A stretch of DNA of 64,000 nt. It comes from Oculina patagonica. Its lineage: Eukaryota. Position 1 is the first letter of the stretch. Every line of letters starts with the position of its first letter. The notes under the pieces are model-generated. The model saw only the letters and a list, made by a program, of their open reading frames with translations. It was not told the origin of the DNA and searched no databases. The position numbers and the translations under genes were made by a program. Shown one piece after another: positions 5,056-26,447 of the stretch. The stretch spans positions 11,594,001-11,658,000 of the forward strand of contig NC_135766.1 of assembly GCF_052425735.1 (NCBI RefSeq), written 5' to 3'.

Positions 5056-6196
5056 CAGAAACAATGCTAGACATCTTATTAGCCAAATCTCCACACTGTT
5101 CCTCCCAACTGAACTTCTCATTATAATGCGCGCGCTGTGTTGCAGCCTGCTCAAGCCTTTCCTTCCTTTCTGTTTCTCGCACTTTCTTGATTGCCTTGGC
5201 CCACACCTTGGCATCCTCAGAATCCACAGTGGATGATGTACCAGACTCAACCTCTCTGAGGGCTTCACCGAATCCTGAATCCCCATGTACCAGGATGGGC
5301 AGACCAGCAGATAATGCTGCAAGAGCTATCATTTCAAATCCCTGTTCACCTGAAGGCATGATGGCAAGGTCTACCTCACAGAGCAATCTTTTCAAATCTT
5401 CTTCACATTTTGGAGGGCTTCGAATAGTAAGCTGACTTTCAGAAATGCCATGATTTTTGGAAAACTGCTTCTGGTTTACTTCTGCTGCATTAACATAGAA
5501 AAGATGATAAGATCTGTCATCCAACTCTGCAACTGCTTTTGCAGCAATGTCAAGTCCCCCTCGGTTGCTACTATCTAAGACCAACACACGAAACTTTCCA
5601 CCACCATTTGTAGCGTGGTTCTCATTCAAAATTTCACAAAATTTACTAAGTAAGCCTGGGGTAAGGTTGAAAACTTTTTTCATGTCAAAACAGAGAGAAG
5701 CAGACAGTTTCTCTGTCATCTTTGGCCCAATGGCAATAGGCAGATCAGCCGCTTGACAGAGTCCAACATTTCTCTGATGCCTCAATTCTCTATCCTTTAG
5801 GGTGGTATTTTTATCAATTGTACCTTGGAATGTAAGGTCCTGATCATCAGGGTCTAAAGCTACATAAATGCTCTTACAATGGAGACTCTCCTTCAAATGT
5901 TCTGCAATTTTTCCAAGTCTCTCACCTACACCAACTACAATGTCAGTAGCAAGGTCTTGTGGTGGGAAGTTCAACCAATCAACAGGGTCATCAAAACCTG
6001 GCTGTTTCTTTGCTTCAACAATGGTAACACCATGTCTGGCAGCTTCTCTCTTGTCCCTTTCACTACATGAATCTTCTTCTGGAACAAACAAAGTGACTCT
6101 CATCCCAGGGATTTTTGCCAATTGAATAGCCAATGTATTCAGTACAGTCAGGCAACGCCAGCGTGGTGCCAGGATGATAACTTTCAATGGGTAAAC
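5056..6196 (-). CDS. GT4 glycosyltransferase-like exon of gene D, catalytically degenerate
   Basis: Acceptor ttgcag|GTT at 6196; donor G|gtatga at 5056. GT-B/GT4 signature region DLAIMPSGEQGFEMIALAALSAGLPILV lacks both Glu of E-x7-E. Confidence 0.88.
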
Positions 6197-7254
6197 CTGC
6201 AACAGAGGAGCATTAGCTGACTCAGCATTAATGAGTACGGTATTCACATACTGTAAGTGACATGTTGCTGACATTGGCTGCAGCTGCACTTAGAGAGTTG
6301 ACTGGGTTAATTTTCTAGAAACCCGGGTTAAAAAATTCCACAAAACTTAACTCGGTTAAAGTATCACTAACTCGGTTAAATTTTTTTAGCGGCCGCATTA
6401 AGATCAGACCAGACTGAAGTGATGTCATGATTAAGCTATTTGAAAACAAGCGAAAACGGCCGGCTTTCATGATAATTCTATTACTTTCTCAATTCTTCTC
6501 CTGCTTTTTTTATTTATTTCAATGCATTTTCGACTTACACCGTTCTTTCCCTTCCTAATGGGTTCTATGCAAATATTCAAGCCCAGTTGTTTCGAATAGG
6601 TTTTTTTTCACAGTCGTTGTAAGGCTCATCGCTCGTCTCCATATTGAAATCGCCCTTAAGTGTGCATTTTCCAAAGAATCTGCGAAGAGCTCGAAGAGAT
6701 CATCAGAAACTATGATAGCCCTGTTGGAGCCAAATAATCATTGCTCAGGTGGTTCTAGAGTTTCCTAGTAGCAAGGGAAATTATAGAATTAAGCCGCTAA
6801 TTGTGTCCGAATGCCATGTTTGCGTGCACGTGTGATGGAAAAGAACATCTTTATGGTGACGATTGACACATTTGACAAATAAAGCAATAGTTGAATCTGA
6901 TAAAAGAACACTAACCTCAGGTTAAAACTACCCAGAAAGGTGGTTTAGAATTAACCTAACCCAGTTAAAAAAATCTATTGTTGATTAATTTCCATGGGAG
7001 CCGCTTACTGGGTTAAGAGTCGGTTAACTTTCCAAATAAGCGGCCTTATTAGACATTTTTTCAAACCCATTTAATTTTAATTGATTAATTGGAAATAACC
7101 CGGCCATTTTATATTTAAAATAAATAAGCTGAGTGAGTTTTTCGTTAGAAACTGGATTTAAAACACTATCAAGTAGCATCTATAACACTTTTACAAATAA
7201 AATTAAATCTTGATTGCACTAAATACACACATGTATGTACATGTACATGTATAC

Positions 7255-23600: not shown

Positions 23601-26447
23601 CTCAGAGTTATCATTATGATAATAATATTCACTGATAAACCACAGGCTTACCATCCTATGTTTGTGAGGTCATGTAAATATTCAAATTTATTCACTAATT
23701 GCTATTGTTAATATTGAAGCTTTCTAAAATCCGCTTTTACGACTCGTATTTGTAATAAAATGAAATAGAAATATTTTCGCATTGTTAAGGTTTGCTTTAA
23801 TGCTGTTTTCTTGGCGATCTGTAGCACGCGAGAGCAGTTCTAAAAGTTTAAGGCCCCAACCACACTGACACGGGTAAATTTGATAATGGAGAAATCAGAT
23901 AACGCCGGGTAAATGTTTTCCGTCCACAGTAACCCGGGTAAATTTGAAAACGGTTCAGTGTGGACGGTTTGCCTAGCCGGAGAAAAAAAGATGCGTTTTC
24001 AAATTTACCTGGGTTAGTGTGGACGTGGCCTAAGTTTTCGACTCCTGTATAGAATACAATTAGGCAAGGCGTGCAACTTCGACATCGACGAATCGGGTAC
24101 CGCCTCTGGAATGTGTCCGAAAAAACATATTTCCTTGAATCGCTTTCATTGGAGATCTCGGTCCTCGAAAGAATAGCCTTCGAACTATAGTCTGGCCCAA
24201 TTTGAGTGCAATCAGTTCGTGCCGTTGTCCTTTAAAACTAGCTGGAATATCAAATTAGGTCGTAAATTTGCCGATTTACGATGATTTGTACCACCTACTT
24301 GGACAATTTATGTAATTGTCACTGAAATTGGTCAATTTTTTTGCCTATGCCCTCATCTTGAAAGCCAACGTGTTCCACTTCAAAACGTCCTCTTGGGTAC
24401 CCCAAAGATATACTGTTAAAACAGTATATTATTCTTGTGCTGCCACTGAAGAGAGGTAAACTATGAATACTGTGGTGTGACATAACAGAAGCGGAATTCT
24501 AAAAGAGCACTTTTAAAAAGAGAGAGAAGGCATTAAATTCAAATTTGCACAATTAAACCACCATAACTTGCTGGCAAACTTTAAATTAAAAAATCCGCTT
24601 CTGTTATGACACTCTAGAAGTATTGACTGATTAGTTTTTGACTACTCGTTCCGCAAACTCTGCCCCAAAATCAAGTTCTTCCCAATTTGGAACTAACGAG
24701 GCTGTACCATCGCCGTTAAGTGCAATCTACCAAATAAAAGATGACATTTATAGTCTTTCATCATTTCTGTATGTCTCTGAAAAATTGAGCTTAATTGCGC
24801 CTATAACAGCCGAGAAATGGGTGTTTTAAAAGGTGCGGGTCAAGCAAAATTTCGCTTTATGAATTTATTCATGCTGTAGGTATCCCCCGCGACCTTAAGG
24901 TCGGCATACAGGAGGGGTTTATCGCCTAGAGCATGCTGACAAACTTGAATGCGTTAACACTTCAACTAGGTGAGTCGTCTTTGTTGGACTTTTTGGGAAA
25001 CTTTTTACAGTAAGAAGGACTGAAAATTTGAAGTATGAAATGTAATTATTCAGTTAAAAGATTTCAATTTACTCTAGTCTTGGCGCACATTTGCTAATCA
25101 CTACCACTCACTTCATGCAATCACAGTACACAGGGCGATACCTGCCGAATTAAACCACATTTTTAATCTTTTAGACGGTAGAACATAACAATATCAAATA
25201 TTCTTACCATGAACCATATTCCACATCTTCTCAACAAGACAATTACACTGTTTCTCGAAGCTGTATACGTAGTGGTCTTTATAGCGGTTCCGCAGCATTT
25301 GAATTTCTTGAAGTCGCTCTGCTCTGTCTTTCTGGCGAACACCAGCAATTGCCTTTGCCCACTCTTTAGGGTCATCAGAGTCTACCACAAAAGATTTGCC
25401 TGAAGGTTCAAAGCGCAGTGCATACCCAAAACCTGAGATACCACTCACAAGAATGGGAAGACCAGCAGACAACGCTGCCAGTGCAGTCAATCCGAATTCC
25501 CCTGTCATTGATGGCATGATAGCAAGATCAACCTCACAAAACAACTTTTTCAATCTTTCCTTGCTTTGCACACATGTTCTAATAATCAGTTGCTCTCTAG
25601 ATATTCCACTCATCAAAAAGTTGACTGCAACTTCTTCCTGTTTTCCATCAGGCGCACCCACGACAATAAGACGGTAAGTTCTGTCCATCAGTTCAACTAT
25701 TGCTTTAGCAGCAGTGTCATATCCTTGGAGAATGAAGTCCTCAGGATCACCACTGCCAAAGATCAACACCTGAAAATTGTCACTCTCTTTTGTTGCTTGT
25801 TTTACATCTAAAAAGTCACTGAATATGTCTGGAGTCAGCTGATATATGTCTATGTGTTTCTCGTACGAATGCAGCAAAGAACAGTAGGCCTCCTGCACCT
25901 TGGGTCCGACTGCAACAACAAGATCTGCCAATTTACACAAGTCTACTTTAGTTCTTATGTCCTCCTTACATCTTATGGAAAAGACCGAGTTCGAGTTGAA
26001 CATTCCGAGTTCTGCTGGCACAGTATGCATTACCTGCACCCACTTACAACTGTGCGACTCGCTTATGACTTGGGCTTGTTTACCAAGCCTCTCTCCATGA
26101 CCCAGTACGATGTCAATGGCAAGGTCTCTTGGTGGGAAGCTCAGCCAGTCGAGGGGGTCGTTGTAGCCTGGACGTCTCTCTGCTTCTCTAACGATAACAT
26201 TGCAGTTTCTAGCAGCTCTCTTCTCTTCTTCAGAACAGGCAAACTGTGGGACAAGGAGAGTGACTTCTATTTGCTTGTGTTTGGCCAATAATGTGGCAAG
26301 CTGTCTGTTTATGGTTGACAAGCCTCCCATAGATGAACTCCACTCACTGGCCAAGAGAGTTACTCTCAATGCTGTGTCGGACATCCCTGATTTACCTTGT
26401 GCTGGTACACCTTGAGATGTGTCAATGACAGTGGGGGGAGACAAATC
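14585..26447 (-). CDS. Gene C: GT4(pseudo)-Roc-COR-GT4-TM ROCO-family protein; exons 26447-25208, 22997-22618, 22319-21550, 20368-20119, 19768-18974, 17688-16452, 14697-14585
   Basis: All six junctions are GT-AG with matching phases (1,0,2,0,0,1); total 4785 nt = 1595 codons including stop. Roc motifs GQGRAGKTS (G1), ESTLGV (G2), WDFAGQ (G3), GTHAD (G4). COR-like region LDFYHDLGVIV...WLIDLFK...MELYGLIA...YFVPAQL...GFVPHGLFAQLL. 5' end unresolved. Confidence 0.85.
15390..15700 (-). mobile_element. tRNA-derived SINE remnant
   Basis: Minus strand GGGTTCGATTCCCGTTGGAGATTCAGGTTTTTTCTTTGCCCCACGCTCGTGAC (B box). Related copy at ~63640-63720. Confidence 0.6.
16452..17688 (-). CDS. C-terminal GT4 exon of gene C, catalytic motifs intact
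   Basis: DEWSSSAGGLSTLNRELA, VVHTAPE, CGRGDAEDFKLKGYD, PSRTEGFGLIVLEALSAGLP (E-x7-E). 1237 nt, phase 0 to 1. Confidence 0.92.
18017..18632. mobile_element. Non-autonomous TIR element
   Basis: CGTTTCTTTGGGAAAATCCAAA at the left end is inverted as TTTGGATTTTCCCAAAGAAACG at the right end. Confidence 0.6.
18974..22997 (-). CDS. Roc GTPase and COR domain exons of gene C (four exons)
   Basis: VPHEIQAQGHKAEAAYQKALKKGSVKVYRGRIMLLGQGRAGKTSL; SVWDFAGQHLYYASHSIFL; PVFIVGTHAD; GEEVPIRWFNFEK; C-terminal Cys/His-rich segment CVACAHC...CDKHRSVCCTHDDC. Confidence 0.9.
23283..24894 (-). mobile_element. Kolobok-like non-autonomous element (copy of 52431-53344) in gene C intron
   Basis: Ends CCCCCGCGACC|TTAA at 24894. 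24430-24894 and ~23290-23375 are reverse complements of parts of 52431-53344. Left boundary approximate. Confidence 0.6.
23852..24030. mobile_element. PIF/Harbinger-type MITE
   Basis: TAA|GGCCCCAACCACACT...AGTGTGGACGTGGCC|TAA. Confidence 0.65.
25208..26447 (-). CDS. N-terminal GT4 exon of gene C, catalytically degenerate
   Basis: SEWSSSMGGLSTINRQLA is retained. GSGDPEDFILQGYD has lost the R and K, and PSMTGEFGLTALAAL has lost the E-x7-E motif. Confidence 0.9.

Follow-up and report, generated by a model that had tools for sequence, protein, structure and literature searches.

Predicted catalytically dead GT4-conflict glycosyltransferase domains, an old clade and a young singleton, beside intact copies in an immune-like gene cluster of the coral Oculina patagonica

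The GT4-conflict domain (Pfam PF20706, "Family 4 glycosyltransferase in conflict systems") has been described as massively expanded in corals, as fused to STAND NTPases and as the C-terminal GT4 domain of AP-GTPase(Roc)-COR proteins, including those of bacteria (Kaur, Burroughs, Iyer and Aravind, eLife 2021, PMC8195603). In the section of that paper devoted to GT4 (section 15) the domain is treated as an active effector and inactive versions go unmentioned. Expansions of glycosyl transferase group 1 domains with TPR, LRR and NACHT have also been reported from Acropora (PMC12314368). The present analysis concerns a stretch of 64,000 nucleotides from the 529-Mb genome of Oculina patagonica (C9:11594001-11658000, contig NC_135766.1; hereafter the window), which is part of an immune-like gene cluster built around GT4-conflict as a known effector domain. 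Judged by their residues, two different kinds of catalytically dead GT4 appear to be present in the window, namely a member of an old dead clade (GTd) and a singleton (GTc) that forms the N-terminal domain of a Roc-COR protein ending in a live GT4 (gene C). The domain itself, its coral expansion, its fusions resembling nucleotide-binding leucine-rich-repeat receptors (NLRs) and the bacterial Roc-COR-GT4 arrangement were known; the dead members of GT4-conflict are what appears to be new here. A literature search for inactive GT4s or pseudo-glycosyltransferases in corals returned nothing relevant, which is no proof that they are undescribed. The explanation that we favour as a whole, with a probability of roughly 0.55, is that the dead GT4s serve the live GT4 domains as docking partners without catalysis of their own.

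The window has a G+C content of about 36-43%, and its long open frames are sparse and nearly all on the minus strand. Four of these minus-strand frames (5015-6289, 16441-17694, 25194-26519 and 41839-43179) encode glycosyltransferase (GT) domains, and adjoining frames encode Roc, COR-A, DED/NB-ARC and TPR. Each of the four GT exons matched PF20706 over nearly the whole of its 385-position profile, with scores to be read against a curated cut-off of 26 bits:

5056 to 6196, minus strand: GTd exon, member of the dead GT4 clade (Pfam 151.7 bits, motifs, clade tree, AlphaFold2 GT-B fold)
16452 to 17688, minus strand: GTact1 exon, C-terminal intact GT4-conflict domain of gene C (Pfam 281 bits, motifs; joined by splicing to the COR-B exon, as seen in RNA contigs X1 and X3)
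25208 to 26447, minus strand: GTc exon, N-terminal GT4-conflict domain of gene C (Pfam 226.3 bits, motifs; donor half predicted dead; acceptor 26447 predicted)
41850 to 43086, minus strand: GTact2 exon, intact GT4-conflict domain (Pfam 287.8 bits, motifs), downstream of DED/NB-ARC/TPR exons at 44808-48953

About 100 GT4 exons were scored in the O. patagonica genome (111-116 candidates, 61-99 of them scored). Motifs were sampled from 46 distinct genome copies, with some 40 lower-scoring copies left out, so that other degenerate ones, for example on C1, C12 and C2, fall outside the sample, and 38 of the 46 sampled paralogs retain the His, Arg, Lys and both Glu. Throughout, "live" denotes a domain in which all canonical residues are present in the sequence and "dead" one in which the canonical set is lost.

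Residues are numbered on the 417-aa open reading frame (ORF) at 16441-17694. A first-pass annotation of the window had proposed that the GTs at 16452-17688 and 41850-43086 keep the GG loop, the His, GR..K and E-x7-E, and G43-G44, H118, R234, K243, E320 and E328 were indeed all found in GTact1 (17688-16452) and GTact2 (43086-41850). The degenerate motifs that it had listed for the N-terminal GT of gene C, GS..Q and G-x7-A, were likewise read in GTc (26447-25208) as GSGD..LQG (R>S, K>Q) and TGEFGLTALA (E>G, E>A), with GG and His kept. For GTd (6196-5056) our motif table agrees with the proposed loss of GG, His, Arg and Lys and both Glu: the GG loop is deleted, GVG replaces GHG, the Glu pair has become Q-x7-A, and a 5-residue deletion in the R..K segment leaves Ser at the Arg column and Gly at the Lys column. 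Both degenerate exons are free of stops over 413 codons (GTc) and 380 codons (GTd), in keeping with the predicted 380-410 or so, and the exon ends 17688/16452, 43086/41850, 26447 and 5056 carry AG/GT splice signals, the one at 17688 coinciding exactly with a joint in RNA.

The alignment to GT4 structures that had been proposed as a check gave the same picture. The R, K, E, E and H columns of the family profile fall on GR..KG, E-x7-E and the His (HSH segment) of solved MshA (3C4Q), and WaaG aligns with the profile over the Lys and E-x7-E; the GG loop lies outside every alignment to solved structures. GTact1 and GTact2 have both the diphosphate-holding Arg and Lys of GR..KG and the E-x7-E pair, and GTc and GTd have neither. 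Because the diphosphate-binding Arg and Lys are gone, with Glu in place of the Lys in the dead clade, neither dead domain would be expected to transfer sugar or to hold a nucleotide-sugar.

GTd and three local copies lie within 152 kb (C9:11,448,007-11,600,289), are 60-64% identical and have GT exons without internal stops. The four share H>V, the absence of GG, R>S/G, E>Q and E>A, and the Lys column holds Glu in the other three and Gly in GTd. In a tree of 129 domains these four copies and seven database representatives form a monophyletic dead clade (support of 100 in the Shimodaira-Hasegawa-like approximate likelihood ratio test, SH-aLRT). Among the 119 database relatives nearest to GTd there is not one with the catalytic set. 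V, I, A or L occupies their His column, a single one has the Arg, and 107 have Glu in place of the Lys; K or Q stands at the first Glu, and L, A or I at the second.

This clade is not eroding. Columns conserved at 90% or more number 107 of 429 in the dead clade versus 114 in the live set, and the clade has a signature of its own in K243>E (89%), Ser>His after E-x7-E (99%) and Y245>L (99%); constraint is gone at the GG loop, at H118 and at several charged residues. Modelled with AlphaFold2 from the clade alignment, GTd has the GT-B fold with a mean predicted local distance difference test (pLDDT) of 89.3 and a predicted template modelling score (pTM) of 0.87, and its best solved matches are GT4 enzymes, namely MshA (E 1e-15), BshA (template modelling score, TM, 0.72-0.74) and glycogen synthase. 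Pairwise ratios of nonsynonymous to synonymous substitution (dN/dS) within the clade, one copy from another sample included, were 0.33-0.67. Their upper bootstrap limits were 0.45-0.93, and a value of 1 was reached in 0.6% of the replicates at most; pairwise values among intact paralogs were 0.10-0.24. The proposed test of dN/dS below 1 on the degenerate exons was thus answered in the affirmative, with bootstrap limits under 1 both for the dead clade and for the diverged part of GTc. The dead clade is old, conserved, expressed in relatives and under purifying selection.

Dead-clade relatives are stand-alone proteins of about 425-455 residues. One of the local copies, L054, is RefSeq LOC144665715 (Oculina; 455 aa), in which the GT exon stands between a short first exon and a last one of 6 residues, and Pocillopora verrucosa XP_058951949.1 (432 aa) is another stand-alone dead-clade model. 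The sister group of GTd, 61% identical to it and carrying the same 5-residue deletion, is represented by Logan contigs from three runs, which match a genomic-type contig over the GT exon alone and have a different 5' exon (MESEESIHP..) and 3' end. These contigs are spliced stand-alone mRNAs, from another sample. Since the homologs of the dead clade are stand-alone gene models, GTd is most likely a stand-alone gene as well (gene D), for which a first exon can be predicted:

8968 to 9063, minus strand: predicted first exon of gene D (MDEEESIPL...), with donor ACG|GTGAGA in phase 0, joining the GTd acceptor at 6196 in frame

This exon resembles the first exon of the spliced transcript P0338 and matches exon 1 of LOC144665715 weakly, over 17 residues at 65% identity (E 0.26). 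For the last exon of gene D, no DNA similarity was found to the 3' regions of the local copies L053 and L054, and there was one weak candidate acceptor only. An exact look-up of the GTd ORF among public contigs returned no record.

The 5' end of L053 (C9:11448007-11449134) shows a break in frame. Its first GT strand (..PLKVTILAAQ) lies in another frame than the rest of the exon, and the GenBank model for this copy, ACROYT_G030853 (P0214; 354 residues), begins downstream of that strand. Either a frameshift or a sequencing error would explain it.

GTc belongs to a different setting, that of gene C, whose remaining exons are as follows:

22618 to 22997, minus strand: gene C exon 2, linker and start of Roc with the P-loop GQGRAGKT (Pfam Roc 29.5 bits; RNA joint 22617/22318, GT..AG)
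21550 to 22319, minus strand: gene C exon 3, rest of Roc with DFAGQ (Pfam Roc 31.2 bits; RNA joints on both sides)
20041 to 20368, minus strand: gene C exon 4, COR-A (29.1 bits, under the cut-off of 35.3; acceptor verified by RNA joint 21548/20366)
18974 to 19768, minus strand: gene C exon 5, COR-B-like, without a Pfam match (RNA joint 18974 to 17688 in two runs, GT..AG, in frame)
13263 to 13297, minus strand: predicted last exon of gene C, a mini-exon for a tail of 10 residues and the stop (acceptor and short ORF conserved downstream of GTact2 near 40558)

Both Roc scores are above the Pfam cut-off of 27 bits. Words of the GTc exon were found in four public runs, at fractions of 0.68, 0.57 and 0.57 for X1, X2 and X3, and contigs of the runs, mapped to 17100-23099, gave the joints 22617/22318, 21548/20366 and 18974/17688, all of them minus-strand GT..AG. 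At 22998 a contig of X2 has a loose end that continues into the reverse complement encoding the end of the GTc exon (LVEKMWNMVH), whose likely start codon is the ATG at 26384 and whose donor is G|GTAAGA after 25208. The reading frame is kept across all four RNA-supported junctions. The donor of exon 4 at 20041 (CCT|GTTAGG) is a putative one, picked as frame-keeping. With this donor and the predicted mini-exon included, the model of gene C is continuous over 1573 aa, comprising a dead GT4 (1-392), Roc, COR, a live GT4 (1151-1562) and a short tail. The contigs are no proof of one single molecule, and some are unspliced, so that the runs also contain precursor RNA or DNA. Gene C is nevertheless a real paired protein, in which GTc, Roc, COR and GTact1 are joined in frame by spliced RNA contigs. 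The pairing of pseudo-enzyme and active GT domains claimed by the first-pass annotation therefore stands for gene C; it does not extend to gene D, where there was no sign of sharing a gene with another GT.

A predicted complex brings the two ends of this protein together. The pair GTact1 and GTc scored 0.71 in complex prediction and the best of three controls 0.01. The mark used for such scores was attained by 51 of 78 solved complexes, against 2 among 108 mismatched pairs. Three runs of the pair agreed in at least 95% of contacts, with a partner pLDDT of at least 81 (82-83 for GTc in complex). The predicted interface is symmetric, lies on the N-domain and includes part of a PGY/F..D segment, of which P102 and G103 (numbered in the 424-aa frame) are at least 94% conserved in both the live and the dead sets. 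On the docking explanation that we favour, dead domains would bind live GT4s through the N-domain surface that carries this segment. GTc would do so within its own protein, under the control of the Roc-COR switch, GTd-type proteins would dock in trans, and the effect would be to regulate or to target the live effector. It is a fair description to call these domains retained pseudo-enzymes in the manner of pseudokinases, as had been suggested, given the purifying selection, the presence of GTc in spliced RNA and the expression of the GTd clade in relatives. Tentatively, one may go further and propose that corals keep a dedicated family of dead GT4s as fixed regulators, adaptors or inhibitors of adjacent live GT4 effectors, both in trans and in cis. 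If that is true, animal innate immunity would contain a pairing of effector with pseudo-effector, much as kinases are paired with pseudokinases.

Several points weigh against this explanation. Solved GT4 enzymes form homodimers, and the complex score may only recall these; it does not tell one family member from another. Conservation of the interface (0.67-0.68) is no higher than the domain average (0.64-0.67). The support for the allosteric-partner option, one of three offered by the first-pass annotation, is in silico only, and both inactivity and binding are read from sequences and models. The dN/dS values are pairwise Nei-Gojobori estimates and not the product of branch models. The taxa named for the clade are Oculina and Pocillopora only, and most of its database "proteins" are ORF calls on contigs from ENA, Logan or JGI. 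The putative first exon of gene D depends on the weak match given above, and the expression and splicing of GTd itself are argued from relatives. The open frame of GTc, finally, requires no function of its own, given that a stop there would truncate Roc-COR-GT4, and the frequency of catalytic loss in the family (in the tree of 129 sequences, lineages fell to two or fewer of the five key residues at least 10 times independently) fits birth-and-death decay for a singleton of this kind.

These last two points lead to the rival that survives best, which concerns GTc only and not the GTd clade. GTc may be a relic in slow decay, a redundant N-terminal copy without a function of its own, held open and foldable since nonsense, frameshift or misfolding would wreck the downstream Roc-COR-GT4. 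Within its 10-member clade GTc is the sole member with four losses, its nine local paralogs being otherwise largely intact, and its branch is long (0.24 versus 0.005-0.10 for the other nine), as expected of a relic. The losses are unevenly placed. Codons 60-165 differ from the clade paralogs by a synonymous divergence (dS) of about 0.10 and reach 93-100% DNA identity with live paralogs at 14.9-15.1 Mb and 23.2-23.4 Mb of C9, whereas the remaining two thirds, which hold the Arg, the Lys and both Glu, are 56-92% identical, with dS of about 0.5 and a nonsynonymous divergence (dN) of about 0.19. The simplest reading suggested by this mosaic is that the 5' part of GTc was gene-converted by a live paralogue. 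Gene conversion from the dead clade into GTc was also considered and rejected, as every 25-codon window was at least as near to a live copy as to any copy of the dead clade. GTc is a young loss in a single lineage, confined to the donor-binding C-terminal half and attached to an N-terminal half near-identical to that of intact paralogs. Two of its residues, L279F and V291I (numbered by profile column), are typical of the dead clade.

The selective record of GTc bears on the relic view from both sides. The dN/dS of its diverged C-terminal part, 0.36 (0.25-0.52), is two- to three-fold above that of intact paralogs, and yet its upper limit is well under 1. Changes have reached 18 of 83 family-conserved positions in this part, mostly charged residues, but 69 of 195 variable ones, so that conserved columns are still preferentially kept (Fisher p = 0.025). 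A relic would also not be expected to have its N-terminal half kept or renewed in near-identity to live paralogs, or its exon included in spliced RNA when it might have been skipped. A related copy about 100 kb left of the window, L040 (C9:11495913-11497115), favours decay: a member of the GTc clade, it carries a single TAA in frame and E328>Q. Its place, 13 kb downstream of L046, a near-twin of GTact2, mirrors the order in the window. Probably the cluster has a segmental duplicate, in which L040 is a pseudogene. Taken together with the recurrence of catalytic loss in the family, these observations leave the relic view of GTc standing as a rival, although we consider it rather improbable. For the dead exons in general, a pseudogene or an assembly artefact was rejected as an explanation, given that their frames are open, that GTc is spliced in RNA and that the one assembly gap in the window is at least 2.7 kb from any GT exon.

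The dead GT4s might instead act as decoys or baits for pathogen factors aimed at GT4 effectors, so that the switch of gene C would be triggered in the way of the integrated decoys of plant NLRs. The layout of gene C invites this idea, as the bacterial AP-GTPase/COR proteins carry their sensor at the N-terminus and their effector, for which GT4 is listed, at the C-terminus (PMC8195603), and gene C has its dead GT4 in the N-terminal, sensor position and its live GT4 at the C-terminus. The dead-clade genes, moreover, sit among NLR-like and ROCO genes with live GT4. However, no such pathogen factor is known, the active-site cleft, which is the surface most likely to be recognised by an inhibitor, is precisely what has diverged in the dead clade, and the conserved signature of the clade argues for a fixed partner and not for an arms race. 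We therefore regard a decoy role as unlikely.

VldE is a pseudo-glycosyltransferase with the GT-B fold that catalyses another reaction, and it stands at rank 13 among the structural matches of the GTd model. By this precedent the "dead" clade could be active with changed chemistry or through another active site, perhaps by way of its clade-specific His and Glu; the near-invariance of the signature residues (S>H, K>E and Y>L) and an overall conservation as high as that of the live set are in its favour. Against it, all of the GT4 residues that hold the donor diphosphate and sugar are lost, the GG loop and the His region are unconstrained, and no new cluster of catalytic-type residues has been demonstrated to line the cleft, so that we think this very improbable.

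Sensing of nucleotide-sugars or sugars by binding without turnover is the least likely of the three options in the first-pass annotation and one to which we give hardly any credence, because the diphosphate Arg and Lys and both Glu are gone in GTc and GTd and the dead-clade Lys has become Glu, of like charge to the phosphates, even though the fold is kept and GTc retains the GG loop and His of its N-domain.

Degenerate GT4s are not confined to the two kinds in the window. In 47 of the 129 sampled domains at least one of the five key residues is missing, and coral "glycosyltransferase" gene counts thus mix live and dead enzymes. One degenerate clade of seven members (P0026, P0062, P0063, P0065, P0069, P0071 and P0072) is without GG, Arg or second Glu, and P0087/P0110/P0120 make up a further degenerate lineage. 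Tandem GT4-conflict domains occur in RefSeq in Acropora millepora XP_044183409.1 (P0002), where the first domain has GG>GV and its first Glu replaced by Gly and the second is intact, and in Stylophora pistillata XP_022800759.1 (P0001), where R>S and a displaced first Glu are seen in each of the two domains.

Two further features of the window touch the ends of its GT4 genes:

1 to 471, minus strand: opening part of the dead-clade GT4 exon that comes next (locus L052), running off the left window edge
13562 to 13706, no strand: assembly gap (run of N), the sole one in the window, either intergenic or within the last intron predicted for gene C

The gap follows the GTact1 exon and its donor at 2.7 kb downstream and precedes the presumed first exon of gene D by 4.5 kb. 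It touches no GT exon and no verified splice site. If the mini-exon at 13297-13263 is used, the gap would fall inside the last intron of gene C (16451-13298). ORFs listed across it (13263-13805 and others) read through N and are meaningless, and the finding of dead GTs is independent of continuity across the gap. An acceptor followed by a short coding tail was observed downstream of both intact GT exons, with 10 residues at 13263-13297 and 8 at about 40530-40558. A hydrophobic frame at 13482-13213 had also been a candidate for a "tail-anchor or transmembrane exon"; this was rejected, since its T-rich stretch and polypyrimidine tract end in the conserved acceptor and are read as intron, and the 10-residue coding tail after that acceptor has a counterpart downstream of GTact2.

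Elsewhere in the window, a second DED/NB-ARC and TPR gene at 59595-63354 (minus strand) is a close look-alike of the gene at 44808-48953, with its GT4 exon (L043, C9:11667799) past the right window edge. An open frame at 34890-35645 (minus strand) has a GIY-YIG-like motif (..YKIPC....CYIGETGR....R..EH..) and looks like the endonuclease of a Penelope-like retroelement amid the immune-like genes. Between GTd and the next dead-clade exon there is an open frame of 111 codons (3861-4193, minus strand) without a Pfam match.

Among the putative immune effectors of reef corals, few have expanded as much as GT4 domains. The conserved, expressed dead clade next to the live genes and the dead/live protein of gene C offer handles on GT4 regulation, and supply defined pairs in which binding and the control of activity can be addressed.

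Set beside the known GT4-conflict systems, the O. patagonica cluster differs in having one clade and one singleton without the catalytic set, and one protein with a dead N-terminal and a live C-terminal copy. The retaining GT4 enzymes MshA (3C4Q/3C4V), BshA (3MBO, 6N1X), WaaG (2IV7) and PimA (2GEJ) have the same two-Rossmann GT-B fold; the intact coral copies align with solved GT4s residue for residue at GR..KG and E-x7-E at an identity of just 12-16%, whereas the aligned Arg, Lys and both Glu are missing in GTc and GTd, and in GTd the GG loop and the His as well. Gene C resembles ROCO proteins (for example LRRK2, DAPK1 and the bacterial AP-GTPases) in that its Roc, in which the P-loop and DFAGQ can be read, precedes candidate COR-A and COR-B-like parts. 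It has neither LRR nor kinase, carries a GT4 at both ends and has a COR-A below the Pfam cut-off.

A further likeness may be that of GtfA-GtfB in the streptococcal accessory Sec system, where an active GT4 works with a non-catalytic partner of GT-B fold. There, as in the GTc-GTact1 heterodimer predicted in silico, a live GT4 is accompanied by an inactive partner of homologous fold. The coral partner differs in being a recent or ancient paralogue from the same family and in its animal, immune-like context, and the gene C pair in being carried on one polypeptide with a Roc-COR switch between. Pseudokinases and other pseudoenzymes have likewise lost catalytic residues, are under purifying selection, are expressed and adjoin or are fused to active paralogues; their fold differs, and the parallel with the dead GT4s of corals would be an analogy of logic only.

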